Notes under the pieces: generated by a model
What the model was told of the DNA's origin: nothing
The model's database searches: none
What the model saw: the letters and a program-made list of their open reading frames with translations, nothing else
Assembly: GCA_965113315.1 (NCBI GenBank)
Contig: OZ220363.1
Direction: 5' to 3' (one strand)
Length of the DNA: 64,000 nt
From: Podarcis vaucheri
Lineage: Eukaryota
Made by a program: the position numbers and the translations under genes
In this document: positions 511 to 45,929 of the stretch, in pieces
Layout of the letters: each line of letters begins with the position of its first letter
Numbering within the stretch: the stretch's first letter is position 1

Positions 511-2244
511 AAGAAATGTTAGTGGTTTCTATAAACGCCCCCAGCATGCACACTCCGTCTCACATCGCCCCCACCGTTCCAGGCAACCCAGAGTCCAAGA
601 GCCCATTCCAGTTGCGCAGAAGCACAGAGTGAGCTACAGAGCAGGGCTTCTGAAGGGGGCATGGCCATGGGGTGTGTGGCTTGGTAACAGCCCCAGGGAC
701 CATACTGAGAGGCCTGGAAGGCCACGTTCAGGCCCAGGCCTAAGATTCCCCACCCAAGCTCTGAAGTGCCCGGCAACATTGCTAAAAGTTTCCACCTTCT
801 GATACGTAAGTGGCAGGCATTCTTTTGAAAAGCTCTAAGGAGCACAAATCACAGCACCTCTCTCTGTGTGTAGGCACATTCCAGATCCTAGAATACCATG
901 CACTCCTCAGCGACTCATGCATCCCATAATACATTAAACTATCCTGAGTTTGGAGAGCAGTTTGTTTGATGAAACTGCTGCCAGTGAGGAAAGTTGCTGG
1001 GAGGCATGGCATGTCCACCTACCTGAGGAACTGGAATACACCTGGCTGGAGATAGGCTCAAAAGTGTGATTGTGCCACAAGGCCAGAAAGGCACCCAACT
1101 GTACATCTTTGCCTCTGTGTCGGGGCACACGTGCCTGGAATGCAGTGAGATCTGACGTGAAGAAATGGTTGCCTTCTGTCTTTGAGTTTGGGGGTCACGA
1201 GGCGCTTGCTCTCACGTTGACACAGCGCCACCCAGAGGGCACCACTGCACTAGCGCTCCTTGGAGCCATTCAGCATCTCTCTTTAGGCTTTGCTAGGTCT
1301 GTTGCCACCACCGTCTGATAGCAGCACAGAGACTGGCCACAAAAGGAGATCAGAGATGAATGAAGGAGAAGGGCTGGATTCTGGTTTCAGTGCCATGAGT
1401 TTAAATTTTCAGAACTCTTCTGAGCCAATGTAAATGATTACAAGGGGATAAGACAACCTGCTGGAGTTGCTCAAAGATAAAACCATTGTTAAATCAGAAA
1501 AGAGCAGTTTCTGAAGGCTTTTAGCCATTTCTCATCCTGACTGATTCTCGTAATAACTGTTGCTTCAGATCTTTCAGTTCCAATATATTTATAGCAGTGA
1601 AATTCAGTTAGTTTTATTCTAAATGCTTAAAAAGCTGAAAGAAATGCCAAGCATTCTGGAGAAGTCTCAATTGTAAGTCTTTTTCTTTCTTTACATATTT
1701 AGCTCTCAGTGGTACTTCCCTGTTCCTCACTTTCTCATATACTTCCAGCCTTCACAGTAATCCTTTCCACTTCTGACTACATAAAATACCACCACTGTCC
1801 CTCTGTTCTGTGAAAAAGCTTCACTATTGAATTTCTGCCTAATCCATAACGTTTATGCACATTTTTCTAGAAAAATGAGCAAGCCACACCACTGCATCAT
1901 GACAATCTACGTACAATATACCCATATTTAGAAGACTATGTGCAGTATTAAAACCTATATTTCAGCAAGTGGAGTCTAGCTAAAAACAGTGTGTTGTGGG
2001 GTAAAGTCTGCCTTTCTCACAAAGGCAGGCTTAAGACTTGCAGTGCAAGTGGTGTATCACTCACCATACAGGGCAGGAGGGGTGGAGAACCTGCCCCTGG
2101 CTTTTTCTCAACCCCCCCCCCCCAATTGTGGAGGAAGATTTATATCAGCTCCATACTGGCATCAAGGAGGAGTGGGAAGCCTGAGGCCTCTGAGACAAAT
2201 AAAGGCTGCACCTGCTTGGATGTGGAATAGAATAGAATAGAACA

Positions 2245-2932
2245 GAATTTATTATTTATACCCCGCCCATCTGGCTGGGTTTCCCCAGCCACTCTGGGCG
2301 GCTTCCAACAAAGTATTAAAATACAGTGGTCTGTTAAACATTAAAAGCTTCCCTAAAGAGGGCTGCCTTCAGATGTCTTCTAAAAGTCTAGTAGTTATTC
2401 TTCTCTTTGACATCTGGTGGGAGGGCGTTCCACAGGGCGGACGCCACTACTGAGAAGGCCCTCTGCCTGGTTCCCTGTAACTTGGCTTCTCGCAGTAAGG
2501 GAACCGCCAGAAAGCCCTCAGTGCTGGATCTCAGTGTCCAGGCTGAATGATGGGGGTGGAGGCGCTCCTTCGGGTATACTGGGCCGAGGCTGTTTAGGAC
2601 TTTAAAGGTCAGCACCAACACTTTGAATTGTGCTCGGAAACATACTGGGAGCCAGTGTAGAGACCGGTGTTATGTGGTCTTGGTGGCCGCTCCCAGTCAC
2701 CAGTCTAGCTGCCACATTCTGGATTAGTTGTCGTTTCCGGGTCACCTTCAAAGATAGCCCCACATAGAGCATATTGCAGTAGTCCAAGCGGGAGATAACT
2801 AGAGCATGCACCACTCTGGCAAGACAGTCTGTGGGCAGGTAGGGTCTCAGCCTGCGTACCAGATGGAGCTGGTTAACAGCTGCCCTGGACACAGAATTGA
2901 CCTGTGCCTCCATGGACAGCTGTGAGTCCACT
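2245..2932 (-). mobile_element. L2-clade LINE 3' fragment
   Basis: Minus-strand translations [23 protein letters not shown] and RAFSVVASALWNALP; closely similar to the 3' end of the 34912-36877 copy; A/T-rich tail. Confidence 0.85.
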
Positions 2933-4489
2933 AGCTGCATCATGGAGGAATGGTGGGATATAAATGTCAGAAAAGCAATCAAAGTAAAAAAAAAAGTTTT
3001 ATCATTGATAAATGATATGGAAAGGAAGACCAACTATATAAAAACCAATCTGGTCTTCATCAAAACACTATTGCACAGGGTCATCCAGTGAAATTAACTG
3101 CTTGCAAATTTGGGAGAAGCAAGTGTGAGTACTTCTTCACAAAGTGTGCAATTGGTCTATGAATATAGTTGCTGCAGAATGTTCTAATAATCACCAGCAC
3201 AAATAGTTTTTGAAAGTGCTACATAAATTTGAATAATTTTATCAGTAGTTTATCAATCATTTTTCAGTAGTTTTTGAAATAATCTGTGGGGAAAGAACCT
3301 CCAGGCATTGCCCTTCTGACTAGTGTGTTTTACCTTGGGCAAGTAGTGAGAACAGTCACACAACTGGATTTCTAAATTTGTACTTGCATCCGGTATGGTG
3401 TTCTTCTTATCATTCGCTCTCACGACTTATTTGTGTGAAAAGGAACATAGTATTAAACTCATCCTAATACTATAAAAAAGCATTTTGCCAAACCATTCAG
3501 TCTGTGCGAAGAGAACCCAAGATAAATACATTAAATAATTGCTACCACCATCACCTCATGATAAATGTGGTAAAGGGTGTGGAAAATCAAATGGCTGTTG
3601 CGGTAGGTAGATATCAAATTCTGAAGCAGTAACTTTTGCCTTTTCAAATTGCTTAGGGCCAACACATGGCACGATGATGCCTCATACAATGAAATATAAA
3701 TGGCACCTCTTCTGCTAATGAACACCTGTGGTCTTGCCCAGCTCCTCTTCATGTCTACACAACTCATGCAGAAGAACTTTCCAGTGAAAATGTCATGGAT
3801 CAGATCTGTCTGTCACCAGCCTTGCCACCCTTAATGGCATCCCAAACCGCCACTTGACTTAATGTAAAGACTGCTGTCTTTGAACAGCTTTCTCCAAGGT
3901 TATTTAGAAAAAAATGGTTGGGGGTTTACTGGACAAACATTGCACTACAGTTCTCAATTTTATGCAGCTTCATCAAAAATCCCACTAAAATTGTAAACGC
4001 CTTGAACACTGATGGCCCCATCCAGCAAGATTTGATTTTAGTGCTTTCTAAAGCAAGGGATGACAGTGTTTGCCAGCAATTTTCAGACACTTTGATGGGT
4101 TTATTCTAGTGGGAAGCCTGAGTATTGCAGGCCAACCCTTTAGCCTAGAATTGTAGTTTTGAAACTACTAGGATGAGCAGATAGGATACATTGGTTATAT
4201 TGAGAGCTGTATGGTTTAAGTTATAGATAACAGACACCCAGCAGTTATTTAACCCTGACAGCCAGAGACTGCAGTCCAGCAGAACTATCACTTAAAGAAA
4301 AAGTGTACAAAATGCCAATGTTTCCTTTCTATTGTTTTCTGAATATTTTTATGGCAATGGTGGTATTTTGTTTAAAATCTGAAGGGTGTTGTGTAAGATG
4401 CCACTCAACCAAAACATTCAGTGCCCAAAGTGTCTCTGGACTGGTGGTCAGGTTATTTGGGATGAAGGCATTTGTTTAAAAATGGCTGT

Positions 4490-6080
4490 CATTCTGGGGT
4501 AGAATAGCCACAATAAAAATGTCAGTACTACCAAGAATCCTATTTCTCTTTCAAAATATCCCAATTATTAAAGGCACAAAGATATTTAAAGCCTGGCGTA
4601 GAGAGATCTCTAGATTCATTTGGCAGGGGAAGAAGCCGAGAGTAAAGTTTAAAATACTGACGGATACGAAAGAAAGGGGAGGCTTCGCCCTACCTGATCT
4701 GAAAATATACTATGAGGCATCTTGTTTATGCTGGGTTAAGACATGGATAAAATTAGAGGATAGGGAAGTGCTAGACCTAGAGGGCCACGATAACCGATAC
4801 GGGTGGCACGCCTATTTGTGGCATGGGCGAAAGAAGGGCCACAAAGGATTTGAGAACCATATATTCAGGGGCCCCCTGTTGGAGGTTTGGGAAAGATACA
4901 AAGATATGTTAGAACCCAGAACACCCCAATGGTTATCCCCATTAGAGGTTATGGCTATCAAAAAGATTAATATGGGAACCAACTGGGCAACTTATGAACA
5001 ACTGTTAATGAGAGAGGAAGGCAAGTGGAAAATAAGGCCGTATGAGGAGGTAAAATCTTTAGTATATGACTGGCTGCATTACCACCAGATAAACGATATG
5101 TTTAGGAAAGATGCCAAAGATAAAGGCTACGCTGATAAAAGCTCCAGATTTCAAATTGAGATCTTGGGAAACAATACTAAAATATTATCTAAGATGTATA
5201 AGTACTTATTGGATTGGAACTTAGCCGACGAGGAGGTTAAGGCGGTAACGACACACTGGGCCAGAGATTTCGGTCGTAATATCTACCAAGAAGAGTGGGA
5301 TAAACTCTGGAATCAACATATCAAATTCACGGCCTGTGTGACACTTAAAGAGAATTTAATGAAAATGTTTTACCGCTGGTACCTGACTCCGGTCAAACTA
5401 GCCAAAATGTATGGATCCTGTAACAAATGTTGGAAGTGCAAGGAGAGGGAGGGGACATTCTACCATATGTGGTGGGAATGCCGAAAGGTCACAGAGTTTT
5501 GGGAGAATGTATATAATGAACTGAAGAAAATGCTAAGATATACCTTTGTTAAAAGACCTGAAGCGTTTCTGCTAGGTTTGGTAGAAAAGGAGATAAAGAA
5601 GAAAGACTACAAATTGTTCCAATATGCAACAACGGCAGCAAGGGTCTTAATAGCTAAGAACTGGAAACAAGAGAGCTTACCGACAACGGAGGAATGGAGA
5701 TCCAAACTATTAGATTATGTGGAGATGGACAGGATGACAGGTAAAATTAGATATACAAAAGATCAGAGGTTTGTTAAAAATTGGGAAAGCTTTACGAAAT
5801 ATCTGGAAAGCTTAAGTAATGAACAAACAACACTAGTAGGTTTCAGAGGTGCTCTGTAAGAGGTAAAGGGTAATGCCAAAAGAAAATGGATGAATGAGAA
5901 CGACTTATGGCATTACAAACATAGAAACGCGGATATATTGTTTATTGTCATTATGGACGATTCGTGGAACGACTGAAGGAAGTCTTTTTTCTTTCTTTTG
6001 GTGAATGTTATGAGTTTGATATAGCTTATTTTGTGTTTTGACTTTTGTAAACTAATAAAAATTATGCATGAAAAAAAAAA
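4490..6080 (+). mobile_element. 5'-truncated L1-clade LINE, young insertion in the ACKR3 intron
   Basis: Target-site duplication AAAAATGGCTGT at 4478-4489 and 6081-6092, TT/AAAA-type target, AATAAA at 6054-6059, poly(A) tail, uninterrupted ORF2 C-terminus. Confidence 0.9.
4519..5859 (+). CDS. L1-clade ORF2 C-terminal fragment (post-RT region and cysteine-rich domain); not a host gene
   Basis: Motifs GRIATIKMSVLPRILFLFQ, FIWQGKKPRV, KERGGFALPDL..YY and CWKC...GTFYHMWWEC; the frame is open upstream to the truncation point. Confidence 0.85.
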   Translation: MSVLPRILFLFQNIPIIKGTKIFKAWRREISRFIWQGKKPRVKFKILTDTKERGGFALPDLKIYYEASCLCWVKTWIKLEDREVLDLEGHDNRYGWHAYLWHGRKKGHKGFENHIFRGPLLEVWERYKDMLEPRTPQWLSPLEVMAIKKINMGTNWATYEQLLMREEGKWKIRPYEEVKSLVYDWLHYHQINDMFRKDAKDKGYADKSSRFQIEILGNNTKILSKMYKYLLDWNLADEEVKAVTTHWARDFGRNIYQEEWDKLWNQHIKFTACVTLKENLMKMFYRWYLTPVKLAKMYGSCNKCWKCKEREGTFYHMWWECRKVTEFWENVYNELKKMLRYTFVKRPEAFLLGLVEKEIKKKDYKLFQYATTAARVLIAKNWKQESLPTTEEWRSKLLDYVEMDRMTGKIRYTKDQRFVKNWESFTKYLESLSNEQTTLVGFRGAL

Positions 6081-6174: not shown

Positions 6175-7269
6175 ATGAATACCATTGATTTGCCAACCCT
6201 ATTTGAACATGTCGAAGGGGAGAATTTCACTGAAACCAACTTGACTTGTGGCAGTGGAGACTGCATCACTGTGGACTCCTTATCATGCCCAGCTATGCTC
6301 AACAGAAATGCCCTGCTTTACACCCTCTCCATTTTTTATATCTTTATATTTATGATAGGCTTAGTGGCCAATTTTGTGGTTGTCTGGATGAACTTCCAAG
6401 CCAAAACCACTGGCTATGAAACGCATCTCTATATCTTCAATCTAGCCATTGCCGACCTGTGTGTAATCATCACCCTTCCAGTCTGGGTGGTCTCCCTTGT
6501 CCAGCACAGCCAGTGGCACATGGGAGAGCTCACCTGCAAGATCACCCACCTCGTGTTTTCCATCAATCTGTATGGGAGCATCTTCTTCCTGGCGTGCATG
6601 AGCGTGGATCGATATCTCTCTGTGGCCTGCTTCACAACCTCCAGCAGTGTTAAAAAGAAGAGGATCCGCCGTTTCATCTGCATCTTTGTCTGGCTTTTTG
6701 CTTTCTTTGTGTCTATCCCTGATACCCACTACCTGAAGACCGTTTCCTCCAACAATGAGACCTACTGCCGCCCCGTCTACCCGGAGGAGAATGCTAAGGA
6801 GTGGCTGGCTAGCATGGAACTGAGCTCTGTCATTCTAGGTTTTGTCATTCCTTTCCCCATCATTGCCATTTTCTATTGTCTCCTGGCAAGAGCCATATCT
6901 GCCTCTAGTGACCAAGAGAGGAAGAGCAACGGGAAAATAATTTTCTCCTACGTCATTGTGTTTCTGGTCTGCTGGCTGCCGTACCATGTCGTGGTCTTGC
7001 TTGACTTGTTGCTGACCTTCCATTTCCTTCCCTTCAGCTGCCACATGGAGAGCTTCCTCTTTGCAGCTCTTCACGTCACTCAGTGCTTGTCTCTGGTTCA
7101 CTGCTGCGTCAACCCCATACTCTACAGCTTCATCAACCGAAACTACAAGTATGAGCTCATGAAGGCGTTCATCTTTAAGTACTCTGCCAAAACAGGCCTT
7201 ACCAAACTAATCGATACTTCCAGGGTATCGGAAATGGAGTACTCTGCTCTGGAACAAAATGCTAAATGA
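6175..7269 (+). CDS. ACKR3: Atypical chemokine receptor 3 (CXCR7/RDC1), class A GPCR
   Basis: 364 aa with seven hydrophobic segments; motifs NLAIADL, VDRYLSV, CWLPY, NPILY; C-terminus YELMKAFIFKYSAKTGLTKLIDTSRVSEMEYSALEQ is characteristic of ACKR3. Confidence 0.97.
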   Translation: MNTIDLPTLFEHVEGENFTETNLTCGSGDCITVDSLSCPAMLNRNALLYTLSIFYIFIFMIGLVANFVVVWMNFQAKTTGYETHLYIFNLAIADLCVIITLPVWVVSLVQHSQWHMGELTCKITHLVFSINLYGSIFFLACMSVDRYLSVACFTTSSSVKKKRIRRFICIFVWLFAFFVSIPDTHYLKTVSSNNETYCRPVYPEENAKEWLASMELSSVILGFVIPFPIIAIFYCLLARAISASSDQERKSNGKIIFSYVIVFLVCWLPYHVVVLLDLLLTFHFLPFSCHMESFLFAALHVTQCLSLVHCCVNPILYSFINRNYKYELMKAFIFKYSAKTGLTKLIDTSRVSEMEYSALEQNAK

Positions 7270-12100: not shown

Positions 12101-13209
12101 CTTTCACCCTCTCCATTTCAAGCTACATCCTGGACTGCTCTTATACGTTTAAGATCCTTACTTTCGGGCATTTCCATTCAAATTTAATTCTGGAGTTTCC
12201 CCAAATGTCTGGTTTCTGTGCACAAATGCTCATCACAGGGTTTGAAGTCATGAGAAAACTGATAACATCAAGGAAGGCAAGAAACTTAAGACGAAAAATA
12301 TTATGAAGGCTTTTATTCATTAGATTTCTAACTGTGAATTCAGGCTGGGTAACAAAAACCAGATAATATTTTATATCATACAATTAAAATAACACCACAC
12401 CTAGATCTGCAACCCAGCTCCTGAAAACCCGCTTAAAGGGTATTGATCTGTCTGTCTGCCTGTTTCCTTCCTTCCTTCCTGGCTCAGTTTCTCAATGCTT
12501 TTCACAGGGAAGGAATGCCTGGTACACACAGCAGCATGTGAAAACATCTCCCTGCAGACTTAGCTGTTAATATTTGATAAATGATTAAGGATGTTAAGAA
12601 CAAACACGAGGAAAGAAAAGCACCCAACCTGCCCAACTAAAGGAGTGAATAGAACCTGAACATATAGGTGCCTAGGTTCTTGGTGTGTGATCAAGAACCC
12701 TGCAAAACACGGTTTCCTCGGTTGTGTGTACAGAACCTTTCTGCATACAGCTGTGCATTCTGACTTTCACGGTGGCTGGGGACAGAGAATGCAATCTTGC
12801 TTACTTCTTCATGCATTCACTCTGCATGCAGTTGTTTGGCGAGGTCCTGGGGTCTCCAGTTCCTCTTAGGTAATAAACACACAGATACAAATATTTTGAG
12901 TTAATGGGATAAATAAGGCCACAGCTTTATTGGTTACAGATGTGAGCGGTTTGGATTAGGTATTGGGTGAAACCAGACTATAGCCTGACTCCTGCCCATC
13001 TGCAGGAAGTCTATGAAGGGTCAATCACCAGTGGGGAAGCCCTATGATATACATCAATTAAGAGCACCCCCAGGGTTCCCGATGGGGTCGTGCCATGGCC
13101 CTAGCCCACGCCGAGGCTTTGGGACAGAAACCACGTCCCCGGATCCCGGGAACAAGACTTACCCAATGCCTAACCACCACTTGAGCCCCAAAGGCTTGCT
13201 GCCAACACC

Positions 13210-14003
13210 CTCACACCTGCAACCAATCCCTAATGCCCTTAACGATATCATTTCCCATATTGGAAAGTTGAACGCCATCATTGCAAAACAAGGCCTCCTG
13301 GTCAAAAGTATTGGTGGGGAACTGTGTCACCTGACTATTCAATAGTTCCATCTCCTTGCCACCATACAATTAGCAATTTTCTTGGCCATTTATTGCCGCC
13401 GGGTGGGGGCAGTCATGCCAACAATGCCTCTCCAAAAGCTGGGACCAGATTAAAGTCTGGGAACAAGGCAGCCAGTTTATCACAGTCCTCTTTGAAGTTC
13501 CAGGTTAGGACAATGCCCTTCCTTAGAACCAAGTTGTTCTCTCCATGTTCAACAATCAAAGTGTCTGATGGGCCATGCTAGATAGCTCTGGCCGTCACAA
13601 TTGGCATAAACTCTTCCCATTTCATGCCACGCCTTGTGATCCAGGAGACTCTGACTTATTCTGGAAGCCCCAGGCAGCTATCTATGCTGGTATAGATGGC
13701 ACGCACATGGGCCCAGTGGGGGGTATAGAAGAAGAAGAGTTTGGATTTGATATCCCGCTTTATCACTACCCGAAGGAGTCTCAAAGCGGCAAACATTCTC
13801 CTTTCCCTTCCTCCCCCACAACAAACACTCTGTGAGGTGAGTGGGGCTGAGAGACTTCAGAGAAGTGTGACTGGCCCAAGGTCACCCAGCATGTGGAGGA
13901 GCGGGGAAGCAAACCCGGTTCACCAGATTACGAGTCTACCGATCTTAACCACTACACCACACTGGCTCGCAGTGTCCCACAATCCATGTAGTCACAGGGT
14001 AAC
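13210..14003 (-). pseudogene. SGNH/GDSL hydrolase ORF remnant of the Ngaro-like element
   Basis: TWIVGH(C)..HWA, RRGMKWEE, LIVEHGENNL and LFCNDGVQLS match SGNH blocks I, II, III and V; in-frame stops; split by a SINE. Confidence 0.75.
13727..13968 (-). mobile_element. tRNA-derived SINE with (CTT)n tail (Squam3-like), nested in the hydrolase ORF
   Basis: Minus-strand head GAGCCAGTGTGGTGTAGTGGTTAAG (pol III A box) and CTT tail; second copy at 42786-43064. Confidence 0.8.
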
Positions 14004-14031
14004 CTGAAATTAAAGAGTTGACAAGGTGTGA

Positions 14032-14560
14032 TTAATGAGGGTTCTTGCAGATGTACCTTTTGTACGCATCATATCCCCAGCATCCCATATCCTTGATTCT
14101 ATCTGTTGGAAGATCCCATGGGTGACCATCGTGGCGGCACCAATCCTAAAGGAATACACCGTGAAATCCTTGGCTGGGAGGCCACAGGCCCAGATAGCCT
14201 TTCACATCACACGTGTAAATTGATGTCTCACTAGGCGAGAGCGATCTTGGTGAATAAGGAAGGGGCCCACACAAGGAGGCCTGAAGTAGAGGTAGCTCCT
14301 GGTGTCCTTTTTGGGACACCGGCCCTTGTGCTCTGAAGCTGAGAGCTTTTGTTGGTTTTGGATAGACAGACGTGGACAAGCAGTTGAGTGGGAGATAGAA
14401 TTATGTCTTCAAGTAACAGCCCCCTGGGGTAGGAGCCAGTCTCGCCCTCATACATTTGCTGAAGAAGGCAATAGCAGTAGCTCGGATGGAGAATGTTTTA
14501 ACCATGCAACCTAGCCTTCAGAGGTGCACGAGGTATTGCACTACTTGATCCTCTGTAGGA
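14032..14560 (-). pseudogene. Tyrosine recombinase ORF remnant of the Ngaro-like element
   Basis: GPFLIHQDRSRLVRHQFTRVM*...DFTVYSFRIGAAT (HSFRIGAAT-type box) and, after a frameshift, IKDMGCWGYDAYKRYI (catalytic Tyr box). Confidence 0.85.
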
Positions 14561-16149
14561 GGCTGGCAAGGTCTGACTGAGTTAGATTTTGTGTGGAAAG
14601 CAATAAAACTGGACCATGCCTTCTTGTAGTTCTTAAGCATGGATCGTCGAGCTTCCAAGGTTCCCAAAGATGCTCTGAGAATGGCTCTGGTAACCGCTGG
14701 GCCTCCAGCACTAACAATTGGAAACTATCCATCTGGAATGGAGATAATGCGTCAGCAATGTTGTTATTAACTCCGGGGTAAATAAATCTGGTGGGAAAAC
14801 GATGTTAGATTCCAAACACAACAGGACAAAGGAGTGGAATAGATGTGCTACCCTCTCAGAGCACAAAGATTGCCTGAAAAGGACATTGACAACGGCTTGA
14901 ATATCTTTCCAGAAGCAAACTTGCTGGTCCATGACAGAGGTGGACAGACACAACTACCGTGAAAATCCAAGAAGGCTAAGGCACGTGTGATGGAGGTACC
15001 CCCCCCCAGCTGACTGGCCCCTGTTGTGCCTGCTGCATCAGATTTCGCCTGGAAATTATTAAACACCCTCATATTATCCTACCAAAGGGAGAGTTCATTA
15101 TATTAAAATAGGAACCTAAGCCATACCCTCAAGTCCTCCACGACTGGTTTGGAAAGGCGGTGAGCCTTGCTAAACGGGCACAGAGGAGGCGACCACATGG
15201 CAAGCAAAGTTCAGGTGCCCCACAAGCCACTGAACCTGCCGGAGTAACTTTCCTAAGAGGGAGCAATGGAGAGATGGTATCCTTAAGGGATGACACTTCT
15301 CTGGGGGAAGGCACGAGGACTGAGCCACCGTGTCCAGATCGATGCTCCCTAACTGACTTCTGTCTAGGCAGATCCTTTGAGTTAAGGGGGGACAAAACTG
15401 GTATTCTAAAACCTTGGGAAATGATCCAAGGGTTCCTCGAGAGTTTGTGAGCTGAACTTCTGGCCTCCCCAAAAGGCACCTTGCTCATATGGCAAAAAGC
15501 AAAGGAAATCCCTCATGCCTGATGTTTGCTGGAGAGCATTCCGCCAACGTAGGCAAGCCACCCATGGAGTTTGATATATGGCGGCCTTGTGATGGAAATC
15601 CACATGCTGTCCTCCTGTGCAGTGTTGTAGTTGACTTAGCTGCAACCAGGAAGGTGAACAGGCACAGAGTCTGAGTGCACCATTCACATGAGATAACCAT
15701 TCCTGTGCATGAGGGTTATTTAAAGTTTATTGTCCAACAACAAGTAATAGAAATGTACAAAAAATTCTGTGTTAATGAGCAGTTGTCCCTTTTGTTAGGG
15801 GTCCTTCTGAAGGATGTCTCCTAAGGTTATCAAAGGCTCATAAGCTAAACTCCCTTCTTGGCAGTGTAATCAGTATTTGTTCTAATGTTACTCCCTGTCC
15901 AAAAGATATGCCTTCATACCTTGGGAAACAGTGAAATGTCCCTTTGACAAGCTAGTAGATGTATTCGTGCTTCTGCAAATATCACTATGAGTGGTCAAAT
16001 GGCAGAGAGGCATAATGTAACTACTGTGTTGTTGTTTTTAATAAATAAGCATCTTCTTTGACTGGGAGATAGAATGGCAAACTCTCTTACTTTGTGAAGT
16101 ATAATCCATTTTCTTATACCGATTGTGCATTTCTTATATCCATTGTATG

Positions 16150-22039: not shown

Positions 22040-22230
22040 TAACAGCAAACATAGACACAGACAACACTGTTGAGTTAAAATTAGGCCACAACTTTACTGA
22101 TTACAAATGTAAGTGAGTTTTGGCTTGACATTGGGTAGTCACCAACTCCTCCAGCCCATCTGCTGGAGGGATACCAGAGGTCAAGCTTGATCTGGGTTTG
22201 ACATACACCAAATTGCTGCAATCCCTACAG
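22040..22230 (-). mobile_element. Ngaro-like terminal fragment
   Basis: CACAGAC...GAGTTAA...AGGCCACAACTTTA..GATTACA...CATTGGG aligns by eye with 12880-12970. Confidence 0.55.
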
Positions 22231-22239
22231 ACTAGCCGC

Positions 22240-24522: not shown

Positions 24523-24860
24523 GGGACGCGGGTGGCACTGTGGGTTAAACCACAGAGCCTAGGACTTGCTGATCGGTTCGAATCCCCGCGACGGGGTGAG
24601 CTCCTGTTGCTCGGTCCCTGCTCCTGCCAACCTAGCAGTTCGAAAGCATGTCAAAGTGCAAGTAGATAAATAGGTACCGCTCCGGCGGGAGGGTAAATGG
24701 CGTTTCCGTGCGCTGCTCTGGTTCGCCAGAAGCGGCTTAGTGATGCTGGCCACATGACCCGGAAGGTGTACGCCGGCTCCCTCGGCCAATAAAGCGAGAT
24801 GAGCGCCGCAACCCCAGAGTTGGTCACAACTGGACCTAATGGTCAGGGGTCCCTTTACCT
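24523..24860 (+). mobile_element. Sauria SINE
   Basis: GGGACGCGGGTGGCACTGTGGG head, GGTTCGAATCC B box, CCTTTACC tail, duplicated CTTACCCTTTGAT flanks. Confidence 0.9.
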
Positions 24861-25285
24861 TACCCTTTGATCAATATGGGGATCCTTTAGCCCTAGGTAG
24901 CAGCACTGTTGACCTTGGTCAGGCAACGCCATCCTAACTCAAAGAATCAGATCAGTCAAGACAAGCTGATGGCATGTAGTGGTTTGTGGCAGCTAGAGAA
25001 ATCCATCCTTATTGAAATTCTTTTGCCCAAGGAGAAAACACTACAGTATCAGATAAGTGATACTGATTGCCACATTTGGGGATGCTGGGGGTGGGTGTGT
25101 CCTAAAAACTGTATTACAATATGATGCCCAGATGGCAGGTCATATAAATAAAAAGCTGGCTTCCTTATAAGATTTGTCCAACAGCTCCACTATTTCTAAG
25201 GCCTGGTGATTCAGCAAAGTTGATGCACTTAGCTAAAAGATAGCAACAGTTTTCACACATGGAATGAATGTTGTGCTTAGATGTA

Positions 25286-25740: not shown

Positions 25741-25920
25741 TACAGATAGGTAGCCGTGTTGGTCTGCCATAGTCAAAATAAAAAAATTCCTTCCAGTAGC
25801 ACCTTAAAGACCAACTAAGTTAGTTCTTGGTATGAGCTTTCGTGTGCATGCACACTTCTTCAGATACACACGAACTAACTTAGTTGGTATTTAAGGTGCT
25901 ACTGGAAGGAATTTTTTTAT
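25741..25920. mobile_element. Penelope-like terminal fragment with inverted arm
   Basis: Same sequence family as 295-510. Confidence 0.75.
25830..25867 (-). ncRNA. Minimal type I hammerhead ribozyme motif
   Basis: GUAU-CUGAAGA-A-GUGUGCAUGCACAC-GAAA-GC-UC-AUAC. Confidence 0.72.
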
Positions 25921-25989
25921 TCCAGCTTCACAGTTACACAGAAAGCATGAAAAGAAGCAGCCCGGTGTTTGCGGTCTGGTGCTGCCTCC

Positions 25990-26600
25990 AGTGCCATCCT
26001 CTGTCCCATGGTGTGGCTCCAGTGGTCATCAGGAAACACTATAGGCTCTCCCACTGGCCCCAGGATTCAAATTCACCTGCCTGCAATCTTTGACCAATCA
26101 TGGGTGGACTTGGGGGCATTGCCATGGGGGGGGGCTGAGTCAGACTCCTGGAGTCCTCACTCAAGTCCACTTCCTGAGGAGAAAAAGCCAGGTTGGTCTC
26201 AGCCTGATCTCAGCCAGGTTGGCTTCAGATCTCTCTCCCACCCTCCCATAATTCATTATATAGTGTTCTGCTTTGCAACTGTGGTGTTCCTGGATTGACC
26301 TTGCTATGGTTCTTATGGTCATCGTATTCAGGGCCAGGGAGAAATTTCTCCCATCAGACAAATTGGGCCCCTTCTGAGGGTTTGGCCTTCCTCATAGCAA
26401 CGTCTGGTGCATATGGCATTGGGTAAGTCCCTAGTCTTTGGCAGAAGGGCAACTGTGAGCCTCTGCCCCACCCTTTTGATGATGGGTTTTTCTGTTAGAG
26501 GGATCCATAAGGGAGGTGCTTCTATCCTTGTGCTCAAGGCCAGAGCGCTCCCTGATGGTTTCCCTCGGGCCTCCACCCACCGCATGATGTCACAGACATG
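25990..26600 (+). mobile_element. Ngaro-like terminal-repeat remnant carrying the structured RNA motif
   Basis: GGCATTGGGTAAGTC near 26415 is identical to the minus strand of about 13156-13170; upstream CCAAT and CCCACCCTCCC; motif at 26297-26404; boundaries approximate. Confidence 0.6.
26297..26404 (+). ncRNA. Putative structured RNA element (ENE-like U-rich internal loop), copy 1
   Basis: P1 TTGCTATG/CATAGCAA; P2 AGGGAG/CTTCCT; internal loop AAATTTCT/TTTGG; P3 CCC-TCAGA/TCTGA-GGG; apical loop containing AATTGG. Confidence 0.5.
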
Positions 26601-26757
26601 ACTTACATTACACTGGCAATATCACAGCTTGACTTATTATTTACTAGATTTTTGGGTTGGGATGTGGGTTGCAAAACTGGTTCTTACATTAGAACATTTA
26701 CAGTTTGTGGAGAATATTCTCCAGATAATTTTCTAGCAGAGAATATTCTTGAGAATA

Positions 26758-27609: not shown

Positions 27610-28748
27610 AAAACTGGGAGGGGTAGCTAATGCTGCAGAAGACAGAATCAGGATTCATGATGACAGATTAGAGAACTAGGCCCAAACTAACAAAATGAAT
27701 GTCAATAGGGTTTCACACTTAGGCAGGAAGAAACAGCTGCACAAATATAAGATGGTTTACATGTGAAAAGGATCTAGGGGTCTTCATAGACCACAAGCTT
27801 AACTTGAGTCAACAGTGTGATGGAGCAGCAATTAAAAATAAATAAATCTAATGCTAATCTAGGCGGCATCAACAGAAGTATAGTGTCCTGATCAAGGGAA
27901 GTAATAGTACCACTCTATTCTGCCTTGATTAGACCACACCTAGAATACTGTGTCCAGTTCTGGGCACCACAATTTAAGAAGGATGTTGACAAGCTGGAAC
28001 ACATGCAGAGGAGGGGAACCAAGAGGATCAAGGGTCTGGAAATCAAGCCTTATGAGGAATGGTTGAAGGAGCTGGGTATGTTTAGCTTGGAAAAGAGAAT
28101 AATGATAGGAGATATGAGAGCCATCTTCAAATATCTGAAGGCCTGCCACATGGAAAATGGAGCAAGCTTGTTTTCTCCTGCTCTGGAGGCCAGGACCTGA
28201 TAAATGGATTCAAGTTATAACAAAGAAGATTCTGAACTCAGCATCAGAAAGAACTTCTGACAGTAAGAGCTGTTTGACTATTGAAGGGAGATTTCCAGCC
28301 TGTGGCAGAGGACAGAGTGACTCCAGAAGACATAGGTGTAAAAACCCAAACTCAAACGAAGAGTGACTCCAGAAGACATAGGTGTAAAAACCCAAACTCA
28401 AACGAAGACTTTATTACAAAACAATAAACTCAAACTCTGGTGGGTGTCATTCCTGCAGGCAGGCTACAAAACTCAGCTTTTTCTTTTATAGCAACGGCCA
28501 GCTGCAGCCAATTAATCCCAGAAACTTCTTAAAGGTATACACACATGATTCTGTGCCGAATGTCCCCTAACATTGACAGCAAAAGGGACTCCCTTGGAAG
28601 GTGGTGGACACTCCTTCCTTGGAGGTTTCTAAGCAGAGGTTGTACAGCCATCTGTCAGGGATGCTTTAGCTGAGATTCCTGCATTGCAAGTGGTTGAACT
28701 AGATGACCCCTGGGGTCCCTTCCAATTCTAAAATTCTATGATTTTATG
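27610..28748 (+). mobile_element. CR1 LINE 3' fragment interrupted by a solo LTR
   Basis: [23 protein letters not shown]...[16 protein letters not shown]; ATTCTATG-type tail. Confidence 0.9.
28279..28572 (-). mobile_element. Short solo LTR nested in CR1
   Basis: 5-bp target-site duplication TTGAC; ends TATTG...TAACA; minus-strand TATAAAA and AATAAAG; internal ~47-bp tandem duplication at about 28315-28408. Confidence 0.7.
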
Positions 28749-31740: not shown

Positions 31741-32092
31741 AAAAGGTAAAGGGACCCCTGACCATTAGGTCCAGTCATGGCCAACTCTGGGGTTGCGGCG
31801 CCCATCTCGCTTTATTGACCAAGGGAGCCAGTGTACAGCTTCCGGGTCATGTGGTCAGCATGACTAAGCCGCTTCTGGCGAACTAGAGCAGCGCACGGAA
31901 ACGCTGTTTACCTTCCTGCCAGAGCGGGACCTATTTATCTACTTGCACTTTGACGTGCTTTCGAACTGCTAGGTTGGCAGGAGCAGGGACCGAGCAATGG
32001 GAGCTCACCCTGTCGCGGGGATTCAAACTGCCGACCTTCTGATTGACAAGTCCTAGACTCTGTGGTTTAACCCACAGCGCCACCCGAGTCCC
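31741..32092 (-). mobile_element. Sauria SINE
   Basis: Reverse complement of the 24523-24860 family. Confidence 0.9.
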
Positions 32093-32349
32093 TTAGGTAC
32101 ACACTAAATGGTAGCCCAACTAAATGGTAGGTGTAGAACCAACTTCCACTCGTGTGGTGGGCTTTCCCTTCTTCTCTTTCCCTGAAGTTCCCAATACGCC
32201 CTCAGAAATCTGCTCCAGGGGGCTGGGGGAACATTGGGGGTACGCTGGGTGCTGAAGGGAGGAGAGGAAGCAGAATTTGCATTTCCAGGTGGAGTGGAAC
32301 CACTGGTGGTGGGGCCAAGGCAAGATAAAGTTGCAATAATGGCAGGACA

Positions 32350-33085
32350 ACCAACCATGATTTAAACAGGCCACGGTTTTATTGATTAAAGACGTTAGAA
32401 GGCTTTGGCGCAGGCATTGGGGGTGTATCCTGAATCAACTGACCTGTCTGCCGGTTGATTATTTGGCAAGATTACCCAATGTTAAGGATCGCCCTATGAT
32501 GTACATCAAATCAGGGCAACTCCCCCCCCCACATCACGATTTTTGGGGGTGGCATGACCCATCCACCCTCCCTCATCAGGGGTGTCCAGACAGATGCACC
32601 TCCCAGGATCCCTTTAAGGGGATCCCCCGATCCTTTGGAGCGAGACCCCACCCCCTGGCCATTTGGACTAAGGACCCAGGCTTGTCCCCATCAACTTGTG
32701 ACCATGACTACAAGGCAGGCAAAACCCCCAGACAGACCCAATTTGTCTGAAGGCAAATTCTTCCCTGGCCCCAAAGCTGGCGAATAAAGGTTTCCATAGC
32801 AAGGTCCTCTGTGGGAGCTGCCTGCTTGCCCTCGGCCAGCCCTACCACATAAGGAGCAGGGCGGCCGGCCAGGGAAACCAGCGACAACTGAGTTGCGGCC
32901 TGGGTGCCCTGGGCTTCTATAGCCAGAGAGTCTTCCCCCTGGCCAGTTCCCCAAACCATGCCCCATGGCTTCAACTGTGGGTGAGCCCTAGCAGCCAGTG
33001 GGTCCAGCGGAGGAAGAAGGGACGTCTCTCCCCAGCTGCACCACAGCCAGGAGGCCGACCCCGCTTGATGCAGCTGCGCCAGAGC
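32350..33085 (-). mobile_element. Ngaro-like terminal-repeat remnant
   Basis: AGGCCACGGTTTTATTG (minus-strand AATAAA..GTGGCC), AGGCATTGG, and the structured motif at 32700-32806; boundaries approximate. Confidence 0.6.
32700..32806 (-). ncRNA. Putative structured RNA element, copy 2
   Basis: Minus strand GACCTTGCTATG...AGGGAAG-AATTTG-CCTTCAGACA-AATTGGGTC-TGTCTGGGGG-TTTTG-CCTGCCT-TGTAGTCATGGTC. Confidence 0.5.
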
Positions 33086-33133
33086 TCCACTTCTACATTG
33101 AATGAGTGGAAGTCTGTTCTGCTCACAAAACAA

Positions 33134-33580
33134 TAGTGATGAGGGAGAAATAAACTTAGGTTCATATTTTAAAGTGAATTTGCACCGTCCAAAACAGTAC
33201 ACAAACTGAAACACAGCTATCCTTTGACATTTGCACTTTTTTCAGATTTGACAGTGCAGTTCCCCCAACATAAGCTCTGTACAAAACTGTGTGAATTAGG
33301 AGAAAGCGTGCATGAAAATGCATGTATTCCGGAAAACAAAATTTTTAAAAATGTATTATATTAGAGGCAAAATGCTTGCCAAAATGTTCATGTTAGATAA
33401 ACTTCCATACAAAAATGTGTATATTAGGAGAAACTTGCATTTTCATGTTGATGAATTCTCATGGGGATTTTGTCTTCTTCTTTATAATGCAGTTTGAAGT
33501 GGAAATGCGGAAAACAAAACTTCAGACTGGAAAAATAAGGAACTGAGAAAAATGAAAATCGGCAGATTTGTCCATCACTA
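33134..33580. mobile_element. Probable old non-autonomous DNA transposon
   Basis: Inverted ends TAGTGATG / CATCACTA and AT-rich interior; no clear target-site duplication. Confidence 0.45.
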
Positions 33581-34911
33581 TGGAACAGTAGTGTTGGCTC
33601 CAAGACCAAGTGTCTTCTCCAGTTTAAATTAGGGTTTTGCAAATATATCCCACCCTTGTGGGTTGATTCAGAATGCATACAGAACCACAGATTGTATGCG
33701 GAACTTCCACATTCCCACTTATGCAGGGCTGTCAGGTATTTGTTATTTGAAAGGTCGCCCCCCCCCCTTTACAGAGTGTAACAGATGTTATTTAATTTCC
33801 AACATGCCTTGCTCTATAAAATTCAACAGAAAAGGCATTGCAGCTTTTACCTTTAAGGAAAATTAATCTGTTTGCCACTTTGACATATGAAGCAAATGTT
33901 CTTTGTTTTGGATATGAACAGCCAGAACCTCTGACTTTGCTGGACTGTGATCCATATACGTTACTCAGGACTCAGAAAGCCTGCCTGTGGATCATTGGTT
34001 GACCAACTTGGTGTAGAATTCAAACTTTAAACTCTTCTTGCTTTTTGCAGATTATACAAGTGCATTCAGAAATCTAGCTGTGCATCCAAATGCAATAACG
34101 GAGGAAGACTACAAAATGCTTGATTATTCAGGTTCAGTGCCACAAACAGAACCCACATGAAATGTTTGTATAATGGCAGAAAATGAATAGCTGTGGTATG
34201 AAATCAGTGGGCCACTATCACTGGGTGTGTGGCTGCAGTTTCATTTATTTATTTCTCAGTAGATTTCAGTGGGGTAAACTCCTGAACTGATACATTCCCC
34301 TGTGTCATTTCTAGAAATGTGACATGGAACTCCTTTTTTAGGTCCCAATGGATACAGCCACCAACAGTGGTAGGGAGCAGGAAAGGCAAGAAAAGAGCTG
34401 GCGGAATCCCCTTTTGCTGAAGCTGTTCTTTGACTTGCCAATCAAGTGGAGTGGAAGAAGAAGCCTTGTCCTTTCCCCCCTTCTAAAGCTTCTGGGCACA
34501 CTGCTAGATTTGAAGAGGTGTTTATAGATGGCTGCAATTATCCTCCTCACATAGACTGGGGACACGTATTCCAGTCAAGACAAAGAGGTAAAACTGTGCC
34601 CTAGAACAGTTGGTCATGGAATCAACCAGGAAGTATAGCTGTCTTAAGATTTATTTTTCTAAAAAAGAAGTATTTTCATAGTCATTAAAGAATTTAAAGC
34701 AGGCTTTGGAGCAGTGGTTTCTCATTCTGTATGCTTGTCAAGCTAGCAAAGTGGCAGTGCACTCAGACACCAGCGTGTGTTGAATTTTTCAGCTTTCAAA
34801 TTCCAAAAATGCAAGGTGCTTATTTTTTTGTAACATGACCTGGGAATACACAAGGTGTTTTGGTTAAACTACTGCAATTTAATTTTGCTTGGTACATAAA
34901 ACATGTGTAAA

Positions 34912-36877
34912 ATCAAGGCCTACCAAGTGGCGATAGCGACGGCGAATAAGAATTTCTTCACCGCCTCTATTGCATCTGCAGAAAACAGCAGGAGGAGACT
35001 TTTTCAGGTGGTTCACAATTTAGCGGAACCACCTGCAACAACGGGGCCCAGTATGGGCCACATGTTCTCCTGCAATGATTTTGCAAAGTTTTTTGCAGAT
35101 AAAATCACTCAGATTCAGGAAGAAGTAGACTCCACCGTGGGAGCAGGACCGGGGCGGGAGAGTGCTAGAGTCCTGTCAAGTCAAGTTGAGTGGGATCAAT
35201 TCCAATCTGTTACCTCCGAGGATGTGGACAGGCTGCTTGGACGCGTGAAACCAACCACCTGTCTCCTGGATCCTTGCCCATCCTGGCTTATAAAAGCTAG
35301 CCGGGAAGGACTGGGCGATGGGCTTCGTGGGGTGGTGAATGCTTCCCTCCGTGAGGGAGCCTTCCCAGACCCGCTGAAAGAGGCGGTTATTAAACCGCTT
35401 CTTAAAAAACCATCTTTAGATGCGGCCACGATGGCCAACTATCGCCCAGACTCAAATCTTCCATTCTTGGGCAAGGTGATTGAGCGAGCGGTTGCTGAAC
35501 AACTCCAGGCACGCCTGGAAGAAGCAGACCATTTGGATCCCTTCCAGTCGGGATTCAGGCCTTATCATGGGACTGAAACTGCCTTGGTCTCACTGGTTGA
35601 TGATCTCCGGCGGGCTAGGGACAAAGGTGAGAACTGTTTCCTAGTTCTGCTGGATCTCTCAGTGGCGTTCGATACCATCGACCATAGCATCCTTCTGGAC
35701 CGTCTTGAGGGGCTGGGAGCTGGGGGCACTGTCATACAGTGGTTCCGCTCCTTCCTCCTGGCCGGGTTCAGAAAGTGGTGGTGGGGCATGAGTGTTCAGA
35801 CCCCTGGGCTCTCACTTGTGGGGTGCCTCAGGGTTCTGTCCTCTCCCCCATGCTTTTCAACATCTACATGCAGCCGCTGGGAGAGATCATCAGGGGATTT
35901 GGGCTGGGTGTTCATCTGTATGCGGATGATACCCAGCTCTACCTCTCTTTTAAATCAGAACCAGTGAAGACAGTGAAGGTCCTGTGTGAGTGTCTGGAGG
36001 CGGTTGGAGGATGGATGGCGGCTAACAGATTGAGGTTGAATCCTGACAAGACAGAAGTACTGTTTCTGGGGGACAGGAGGCGGGCAGGTGTGGAGGATTC
36101 CCTGGTCCTGAATGGGGTAACTGTGCCCCTGAAGGACCAGGTGCGCAGCCTGTGAGTCATTTTGGACTCACAGATGTCCATAGAGGCACAGGTCAAATCT
36201 GTGTCCAGGGCAGCTGTTTACCAGCTCCATCTGGTACGTAGGCTGAGACCCTATCTGCCTGCGGACTGTCTCGCCAGTGGTGCATGCTCTGGTTATCTCC
36301 CGCTTGGACTACTGCAATGCACTCTACGTGGGGCTACCTGTGAAGGTGACCCGGAAACTACAACTAATCCAGAATGCGGCAGCTAGACTGGTGACTGGGG
36401 GCGGCCGCCGAGATCATATAACACCGGTCTTGAAAGACCTACATTGGCTCCCAGTATGTTTCCAAGCACAATTCAAAGTGTTGGTGCTGACCTTTAAAGC
36501 CCTAAACGGCTTCGGCCCAGTATACCTAAAGGAGCATCTCCACCCCCATCGTTATGCCCGGACGCTGAGGTCCAGCGCCGAGGGCCTTCTGGCGGTTCCC
36601 TCATTGCGAGAAGCAAAGCTACAGGGAACCAGGCAGAGGGCCTTCTCGGTAGTGGCTCCCGCCCTGGGGAGCGCCCTTCCAGCAGATGTCAAAGCGATAA
36701 ACAACCACCTGACATTCAGGAGACATCTTAAGGCAGCCCTGTTCAGGGAAGTTTTTAACGTGTGATATTTTACTGTATTTTTGGTTTCTATGGAAGCCGC
36801 CCAGAGTGGCTGGGGAGGCCCAGCCAAATGGGCGGGGTATAAATAATAAATTATTATTATTATTATTATTATTATTA
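34912..36877 (+). mobile_element. 5'-truncated L2-clade LINE with frameshifted reverse transcriptase
   Basis: PLLKKPSLD..NYRP.SNLPFLGK, QSGFRPYHGTETAL, LLDLSVAFDTIDH, GVPQGSVLSP, YADDTQLY, SRLDYCN, LHWLPV spread over several frames; (TTA)n tail. Confidence 0.92.
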
Positions 36878-44309: not shown

Positions 44310-45050
44310 TTTGTTTAAGGTTTTTGGCATAATTTTGGCCTCAACTTTATTAAAATACAAAAATGTGAATGGTTGCTTAGGCATTGGTTGGGACTATCTG
44401 CCCCCACCATGGGGGACAGACTGACATTCCGCACGATGCGAAAGTCAGAAAAGGGGAATACACTTGGGGGTAGCGATGGAGCAGGGAACCTGCCCTCAGC
44501 CCTCCCCAAATGCAACCAGGGGCTCTTGCAATGGCCCGAGCCCCCTTGACAGAGTGGACAAGCAATAGTTAGCCCCCAATTCCTTTAACGGAATCCCTTG
44601 CAGCAGCAGCATTAGAGGGGCAGGCACAGCCAATCCATGCCCCTCAACCAACCAAACCATAAACCAATGCCTAACCGCAACCTTACAAGTTGTGACGATT
44701 TGCTATGCAGTAGACAAAAACCAAATGGCCCCAGCCAATCAGCCAGATGGACAAAATTCCTACTGGGCCCCTGCCCCAAAGCAGACGACCCCATGACAGG
44801 CATAGCAAGGTCAAAGCGAACAACCCTAATTCTAGGGAGGGGGGGGACGGGCAATCTGATGCACGGGCAAAAAGAGGAAGCCCTAGCCTCGTGCAAGGAG
44901 TTTTAGCATTTCTGTCTGTCAATCAACAAATGGCAACATTAACTTCTTCCCAACAACAAGGGAAGCCCCAATCGCATCAGTGGCCAACGATCAATTAGGC
45001 CGCCCCCAACTTTGGAGTGTCCTGGTGGCCCCCACCGCAACACGTGCTCT
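44310..45050 (-). mobile_element. Ngaro-like terminal-repeat remnant
   Basis: GGCCTCAACTTTATT (minus-strand AATAAAGTTGAGGCC); TTAGGCATTGG inverted pair as in 12956-13173; structured motif at 44694-44812; boundaries approximate. Confidence 0.65.
44694..44812 (-). ncRNA. Putative structured RNA element, copy 3
   Basis: Minus strand GACCTTGCTATG...CAGTAGG-AATTTTGT-CCATCTGGC-TGATTGGCTGGG-GCCATTTGG-TTTTTG-TCTACTG-CATAGCAA. Confidence 0.55.
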
Positions 45051-45334
45051 CCATGAAGGAGAACACACTTTCTCATTCTCTCCTTTCTGTTGTCTGCTGC
45101 ACACTCTGGGCCTTATCCGGCCAGGCCTGGTTTCTCCCCTCCCCACTTCTACATGAGAAGGACCTCAAGATCCTCTTTGGTGGGGGCTTGGGAGGTTATA
45201 TAGTGGCACTGAGGCACTTCTGGCCAGCCAGTTATAGCCTCACAGCCATAGGAAGGGCAACAGCGGTGCAGCTCCTCTGTGATAGTCTTCTTTCTGCCTT
45301 TTATGTTTTATTTCTTCTGCTTAAGGTGGCCGTA

Positions 45335-45681
45335 GCGGACGCGGTTGGCGCTGTGGGTTAAACCACAGAGCCTAGGACTTGCCGATCAGAAAGTTGGTGG
45401 TTCGAATCCCTGCACCGGGGTGAGCTCCTGTCGCTTGGTCCCTGCTCCTGCCAACCTAGCAGTGCGAAAGCACGAAGTGCAAGTAGATAAATAGGTAACA
45501 CTCCAGCAGGAAGGTAAACGGCATTTTCATGTGCTGCTCTGGTTCGCCAGAAGCGGCTTAGTCATGCCGGCCACAAGACCCAGAAGCTGTACGCCGGCTC
45601 CCTCGGCCAATAAAGCAAGATGAGTGTCGCAACCCCAGAGTCGGCCACGACTGGACCAAATGGTCAGGGGTCCCTTTACCT
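45335..45681 (+). mobile_element. Sauria SINE
   Basis: Family sequence; 14-bp target-site duplication TTAAGGTGGCCGTA. Confidence 0.92.
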
Positions 45682-45929
45682 TTAAGGTGGCCGTATGTCC
45701 TACTTTATAGAGGACAATCCTCTGTTTGAAGAAGTCTTCTGTCTGAAGCAATATCTGCTCCAAGTCTGGTTTAAAGATAAAGAACAACTGGAAAGGAGAC
45801 CCGAGGCTGCCTATCAGCACATAAATCTGCATGCAAATTTTACACACATCTAAGTTTTCTAGAGCAGCAACAAAGTAATTAAATTGATGGGGGGAAGGAT
45901 GGGACAAAGGATTTGGCAGCCTATGATGG

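Follow-up and report, generated by a model that had tools for sequence, protein, structure and literature searches.

A motif of ~110 nt present in three full copies in the 64-kb window (the whole stretch of DNA analysed here) looks like a real, undescribed RNA element. Our preferred reading, to which we assign a probability of roughly 0.4, is that it constitutes a structured sense-strand RNA domain in the 3′UTR of lizard Ngaro-like retrotransposons (DIRS order, tyrosine-recombinase type) and of their non-coding derivatives, where it would mark the transcript as a template for the element's own replication machinery. The copies lie at 26297–26404 on the plus strand (c1) and at 32700–32806 and 44694–44812 on the minus strand (c2 and c3), where a first-pass annotation of the same DNA had placed them, and within the 64 kb the only three occurrences of the 12-mer GACCTTGCTATG fall inside these sites. 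Pairwise identity of the motifs in a MAFFT alignment is 58–70%, compared to 35–37% for the 200 nt upstream and 42–45% for the ~350 nt downstream; the flank values are at about the chance level of force-aligned unrelated DNA, in agreement with the earlier description of these stretches as otherwise poorly alignable remnants. Local alignment of the 600 nt upstream was no better than that of shuffled sequence, and downstream it detected only a marginal second block. The motif is a conserved, structure-keeping island, within which GACCTTGCTATG (the 5′ strand of the closing helix P1), GGGCC, AATTT, ATTGG, and TTT.G are invariant in c1–c3.

A covariance model built from c1–c3 scored them at 116, 102.5, and 104 bits, respectively, and with filters off returned only these three seed copies from the 64 kb, missing a decayed fourth copy (c4, 13192–13295, minus strand). 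The latter reads GGCCTTGTTTTGC ... GATTGG ... GTGAGGGTGTTG ... GCAGCAAGCC, and retains the P1 arms, GATTGG, and GUGAGGGUGUUG, with the 3′ strand of helix P2 deleted. Elsewhere in the window the model gave no match, not even in the L2/CR1-type LINE or its tails, and the suggestion of the first-pass annotation that CR1 3′UTRs share the motif finds no support here. This LINE, a reverse transcriptase with frameshifts at 34900–36762 (plus strand; RVT_1, YADD, and a typical C-terminal region), is unrelated to the motif. ARAGORN predicted no tRNA-like gene, and pattern scans gave no match in viral contigs and a single match in metagenome contigs, attributable to chance in a bacterial coding sequence. 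Spurious ORFs across the motif, sought as a route to other genomic copies, yielded none, and our literature search found no description of a structured 3′UTR element in Ngaro or DIRS elements.

RNAalifold analysis of c1–c3 recovered helices P1, P2, and P3 together with the internal and apical loops, returning the architecture proposed from the letters (closing helix, linker, P2, internal loop, P3, apical loop). P1 pairs GAC and UUGCUAUG with CAUAGCAA and GUC, P2 comprises 7 bp, the internal loop between P2 and P3 is the invariant AAUUU/UUU(U)G, and the apical loop carries the invariant AUUGG. For c1, the consensus fold places the 5′ strand of P1 at 26297–26308, the apical ATTGG at 26362–26366, and the 3′ strand of P1, CATAGCAA, at 26393–26400, followed by GTC at 26402–26404 (all plus strand). 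On the consensus structure, 88% of cells are paired, compared to 34–54% when the 3′ partners are slid by 1–3 columns. Double-sided pair changes number five (three in P2 and two in P3), whereas the slid controls have 0–1 and column shuffles average 2.3 ± 1.2, with 20/500 reaching five; with only three full sequences, the covariation is not statistically established. The claim that P2 and P3 differ in sequence yet still pair is nonetheless upheld at the level of individual positions, with three compensatory positions in P2, as in AGGGAG/CUUCCU of c1 versus CAGUAGG/UCUACUG of c3, and two in P3 across c1–c3, but P2 of c2 contains two mismatches.

The individual copies differ in how well they fold. 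The best folded is c3, for which the minimum-energy fold is the proposed architecture with an additional hairpin, P1a, in the 5′ linker. The minimum-energy fold of c1 prefers a competing local hairpin (GGGAGA/UCUCCC), and c2, which has three G-U pairs and one mismatch in P1 besides its P2 mismatches, folds alone no better than its shuffles (z −0.57). The strands of c1–c3 also differ, with 74 paired cells including 12 G-U on the sense strand versus 65 including 3 G-U on the antisense strand, and a lower minimum free energy on the sense strand in all three copies. This asymmetry in G-U pairs and energy points to a single-stranded sense molecule, most simply RNA, and the invariance of the loop letters while the stems vary suggests that the loop letters matter, most simply as a binding site. 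A coding reading of the motif was rejected, as the copies differ by indels whose lengths are not divisible by three, and stops abound in the upstream frames.

The second block, at the 3′ side, is common to c2–c5 and lies just before AATAAA and a GU-rich element; the distance of ~320–340 nt from the motif to a same-strand AATAAA noted earlier for two copies was confirmed as 317 nt (c2) and 343 nt (c3), counted from where the motif ends. This 3′ block contains a palindrome TGATGTAYATCA, a hairpin, (A/C)CCAAUGCC, and AAUAAA (AGUAAA in c5), after which c2–c5 share GUGGCC and, ~35 nt later, a GU-rich run. Judged from its sequence, this arrangement is what a genuine poly(A) signal looks like, the tail itself being predicted. 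An alternative in which AATAAA serves as a TATA box behind a CCAAT box was judged less likely because of the conserved GTGGCC and GU-rich element downstream. The c2 block (32368–32523, minus strand) includes the palindrome TGATGTACATCA, CCCCCAATGCC at 32413–32423, and AATAAA at 32378–32383 followed by GTGGCC, and aligns with its c4 counterpart (12916–13071, minus strand) at 65% identity over 164 nt (sensitive blastn, E 1e-8). The remainder of the c4 3′UTR (12905–13175, minus strand) holds the hairpin CCTGCAGATGGGCAGG at 12991–13006 and AATAAA at 12926–12931, with a GU-rich run at ~12875–12890. The fifth locus, c5 (22040–22232, minus strand), was found by blastn and consists of the 3′ block only, its 5′ side being cut by an L2/CR1-type tail; it carries ACCCAATGTCAAGCC at 22122–22136, the hairpin CCAGCAGATGGGCTGG at 22151–22166, and AGTAAA at 22093–22098. 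Between c4 and c5, the hairpin changes from CCUGC-AGAUGG-GCAGG to CCAGC-AGAUGG-GCUGG, a compensatory exchange.

The motif and the 3′ block are further connected by a long-range helix, in which UUAGGCAUUGG(G/U)U, ~10–15 nt 3′ of the motif, is complementary to CCAAUGCC, ~40 nt before AAUAAA. In c3, the 5′ strand at 44662–44682 (minus strand; GGTTGC GG TTAGGCATTGGTT) pairs with the 3′ strand at 44371–44389 (AACCAATGCCTAAGCAACC), upstream of AATAAA at 44346–44351, forming 13/13 bp and a further 6 bp (19 bp in all) within the minimum-energy fold; the perfect 13-nt complement appeared in 0/500 shuffles, and the fold of the 506-nt c3 3′UTR (z −3.2) holds both the motif and this helix. The equivalent strands in c4 (13161–13175 and 12953–12968, minus strand) form 12/13 bp, one U-A pair of c3 being replaced here by G-C. 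The c1 copy breaks off near 26640 and so lacks the 3′ partner; its remaining 5′ strand GGCATTGGGTAAG (26415–26427, plus strand) is a perfect complement of the family-majority ACCCAATGCC; as RNA, GGCAUUGGGU exactly complements ACCCAAUGCC, the 3′ strand that the contigs give as the family majority. For c2, the 5′ strand is degraded, and within CCCCCAATGCC on the 3′ side the change 32422 G>T corresponds to the majority letter among the contigs on this copy. By closing off ~270 nt, the long-range helix would place the motif close to the 3′ end of the RNA.

The nature of the host element was approached through c4, the motif of which lies ~115 nt downstream of the stop that ends a decayed recombinase/hydrolase-like body (13413–14804, minus strand, read by eye). 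The pieces of this body comprise an RNase H end ('IPGVNNNIADALS', 14544–14804), tyrosine-recombinase pieces ('YSFRIGAAT', 14205–14408 and 14013–14201), and a hydrolase-like piece ('LIVEHGENNL', 13416–13577) followed by the stop, all on the minus strand. An Atlas feature search related the recombinase piece to tyrosine recombinase fragments with a score of 0.95; Pfam recognized no family in the decayed pieces, including the hydrolase-like one, and a HMMER search with the recombinase piece against 1.8 billion proteins gave two unrelated matches. Amphibian Ngaro-like elements are ordered RT/RH, recombinase, and SGNH hydrolase (PMC9210276), and the same order in the c4 body makes a Ngaro-like assignment plausible. 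The motif therefore plausibly belongs to the 3′UTR of a Ngaro-like element, as judged from one decayed element. The earlier label 'Ngaro-like terminal remnants' gains from the position of c4 directly 3′ of recombinase- and hydrolase-like remnants, but not from Pfam, which was blank, or from split direct repeats (A1 ... B1-A2-B2), of which none above shuffles was found inside the 3′ regions of c2, c3, and c4. No coding similarity occurs within 2.5 kb upstream of c1–c3, which would make these copies remnants or non-coding derivatives.

To place the c2 locus in its genomic context, Logan contigs from two low-coverage DNA runs of two species were aligned to 32120–33319 at a likeness of at least 80%. 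Summed contig depth peaks on the motif (4337 and 2382 in two bins, 32720–32799) and on the 3′ block (1200–3500, 32360–32520), compared to 120–660 between the blocks and 50–400 upstream. Individual contigs of 1.1–1.3 kb align over the motif alone or the 3′ block alone, and many joints connect the two across unalignable DNA. The occurrence of both blocks in ~10x more genomic sequence than the flanks of c2 is as expected from selection on two modules across many subfamilies. The possibility that the motif is the 5′ end of a short element was rejected for c2, where moderately repeated DNA continues for at least 350 nt upstream. Two RNA runs gave about one read on the motif, RNA depth being almost nil. 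A separate, very-high-copy short repeat at 33160–33240 reaches a summed contig depth of ~57,000 versus 4,300 on the motif, and is the only part of 32120–33319 with RNA reads in both RNA runs.

For a template role, the proposed arrangement would be as follows. The domain would begin ~115 nt past the last ORF and ~320–340 nt before the poly(A) signal, and would adopt a long irregular hairpin or a three-way junction closed by P1. A variable hairpin in the 5′ linker would end in the invariant GGGCC, with P2 and P3 flanking the AAUUU/UUU(U)G loop and AUUGG presented at the apex. The strand ~10–15 nt 3′ of the motif would pair with ACCCAAUGCC ~40 nt before AAUAAA, folding away ~270 nt. Displayed by the stems, the invariant loop sequences may then form a binding platform by which the RNA is marked as a replication template, through recruitment of the reverse transcriptase, a first-strand start near the 3′ end, or packaging. 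Such a role would explain why both blocks are kept in derivatives lacking any coding sequence. We rank template recognition first because the non-coding derivatives keep exactly these modules, because folding moves the motif up to the 3′ end, and because the primer and start of reverse transcription in DIRS-order elements are unknown, as are the cis RNA features that DIRS and Ngaro elements need (PMC7192593). For DIRS-1, a hairpin at the mRNA 3′ end was proposed as a possible reverse-transcription primer by Poulter and Goodwin, as cited in PMC7192593. DIRS-1 resembles the present case in belonging to the same retrotransposon order, in having a structure near the RNA 3′ end, and in its unsettled priming mechanism, but its hairpin is a 14-nt terminal feature, whereas the motif is a multi-helix domain of ~110 nt with a long-range helix in an RNA that is predicted to be polyadenylated.

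In 'stringent' LINEs and their partner SINEs (e.g. eel UnaL2), a 3′UTR stem-loop is recognized by the reverse transcriptase of the element. As in these LINEs and SINEs, a structured 3′ end is here the only part common to diverged non-coding derivatives and a coding element; the hairpins of stringent LINEs, however, are short and strictly terminal, and their elements are of the endonuclease type, whereas the motif lies ~320–340 nt upstream of AAUAAA in a recombinase-type element. It is conceivable, at less than even odds, that the motif and long-range helix constitute the first defined cis-acting RNA of vertebrate tyrosine-recombinase retrotransposons, one that recruits reverse transcriptase or clamps poly(A) with an unusually short U loop and is kept by thousands of non-coding copies. 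The analysis defines a conserved, compensated structure with a long-range helix, common to a coding element and to abundant non-coding copies. It offers a concrete target for mutagenesis, binding, and probing, as well as a seed for a covariance model with which reptile and amphibian elements could be annotated.

The most serious competitor, which we regard as a tentative possibility, is a post-transcriptional element, bound by a host factor, that would make the genomic RNA, which is intronless and has multiple ORFs, more stable or better exported from the nucleus, as a CTE or PRE does. The invariance of AAUUU/UUU and AUUGG while the stems vary is the pattern of a binding site, and the persistence of these letters across subfamilies with unalignable flanks would be explained by a constant host factor no less well than by the fast-evolving proteins of the element, a point against the template reading. 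Movement of the motif towards the poly(A) site by the long-range helix, and a poly(A) signal with a GU-rich downstream element that appears real, also suit this explanation. Retroviral CTEs and hepadnaviral PREs are export elements, and the loops of the CTE are 16-nt mirrored repeats. By description only, the motif resembles them in its location towards the 3′ end of an unspliced retroelement RNA and in its form, a long irregular hairpin whose internal-loop sequences are conserved.

A minority version of the host-factor explanation is the ENE proposed by the first-pass annotation, in which a short U-rich clamp would bind the poly(A) tail. ENEs are defined by a U-rich internal loop, about five U-A-U triples, and adjoining G-C pairs (PMC7583470, PMC12501189). 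The consensus fold shows the stem-loop shape, as P2, internal loop, and P3, and so do the minimum-energy folds of c2 and c3; a poly(A) signal lies downstream (AATAAA in c2–c4; AGTAAA in c5, which has the 3′ block only). Like the ENEs of KSHV PAN, MALAT1, plant and fungal transposons, and Arabidopsis Evade, the motif is a stem-loop in which two helices enclose an internal loop containing U, and it lies towards the 3′ end of a retroelement RNA that is polyadenylated, here by prediction. That hundreds of nt separate it from the poly(A) site is no objection, since the Evade ENE, between ORF and 3′ LTR, provides a retrotransposon precedent for a position far upstream (PMC12501189), and the long-range helix would shorten this distance further. 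The U tracts of c1, c2, and c3, however, are UUU, UUU, and UUUU on the 5′ side and UUU, UUUU, and UUUUU on the 3′ side; at 3–4 and 3–5 nt within a 5′ loop side of AAUUU, as opposed to five or more in ENEs and the five U-A-U triples formed by KSHV PAN (PMC7583470), the tracts as spelled here fall short of what a canonical ENE requires. G-C pairs adjoining the U loop, which are essential in the Evade ENE (PMC12501189), also appear not to be conserved, the top of P2 being A.C, G-C, or G-U and the bottom of P3 being U-G, C-G, or G-U in c1–c3. The motif moreover includes parts beyond an ENE, namely the extra closing helix, the linker hairpin, and the conserved AUUGG apical loop. A comparison with Rfam, as the first-pass annotation had advised, found no Rfam 15 family at its gathering score in the 64 kb and nothing relevant at E≤10 around c1–c3. 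Although a true ENE is therefore very improbable, poly(A) binding by the U loop would, if true, mean that vertebrate transposons also have ENE-type elements, in a minimal form.

The conserved letters could also act in DNA, as a cluster of CCAAT boxes (NF-Y sites in both orientations) serving as an enhancer or promoter, or as a site of action of the tyrosine recombinase, and this we consider improbable. ATTGG/CCAAT occurs 16 times in the 3′UTR copies of c1–c5 versus 3.6 expected, a four-fold excess reached in 0/1000 shuffles, and does so at conserved positions in the apical loop and in both arms of the long-range helix; the c3 loop CTGATTGGCT, which we take to be a textbook inverted CCAAT box, is counted in favour of this explanation. 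Compensatory changes and 12 sense-only G-U pairs, by contrast, would be unexpected for sites in double-stranded DNA. In an element that lacks terminal repeats, a promoter placed at the 3′ end would drive transcription away from the element, and no split direct repeats were detected in the 3′ regions of c2–c4. Recombinase core sites consist of short inverted repeats around a 6–8 bp spacer, whereas the arms of the motif are ~85 nt apart.

An absence of function, in which case the motif would owe its conservation to chance, to a mutational cold spot, or to the copying of a fragment from one repeat to another, would be consistent with there being only three copies, two of them imperfect. We regard this as still less probable, since the block is kept between flanks that are no more alike than expected by chance, since contig depths in the thousands single out the same two blocks in two species, and since P2 varies in a compensatory manner. 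Ribozymes occur in several retrotransposon classes, and a multi-helix junction with invariant unpaired nucleotides is what a new self-cleaving class in the element RNA might look like, but this suggestion of the first-pass annotation is the least probable of all, given that no Rfam ribozyme (hammerhead, HDV-like, twister, pistol, hatchet, or other) matches, that cleavage in the middle of the 3′UTR would separate the genomic RNA from its poly(A) signal and from the conserved 3′ block, and that no pile-up of molecule ends was seen, though RNA depth is almost nil.

Several further features of the window were recorded. An inverted repeat at 25777–25921, ~400 nt upstream of c1, has 53-nt arms that are 96% complementary and 39 nt apart, and a perfect 46-nt tandem duplication lies at 28314–28405. 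A tRNA-derived SINE is present in three copies that are 83–94% alike (24524–24861, 31742–32107, and 45321–45683), two of them near motif copies. A stop-free frame of 459 codons at 4480–5856 (plus strand) has a strong G and A skew and corresponds to no Pfam family, and an intact intronless ORF of 364 aa at 6175–7269 (plus strand) encodes a rhodopsin-type GPCR (7tm_1, E 1e-61) that is probably a host gene.
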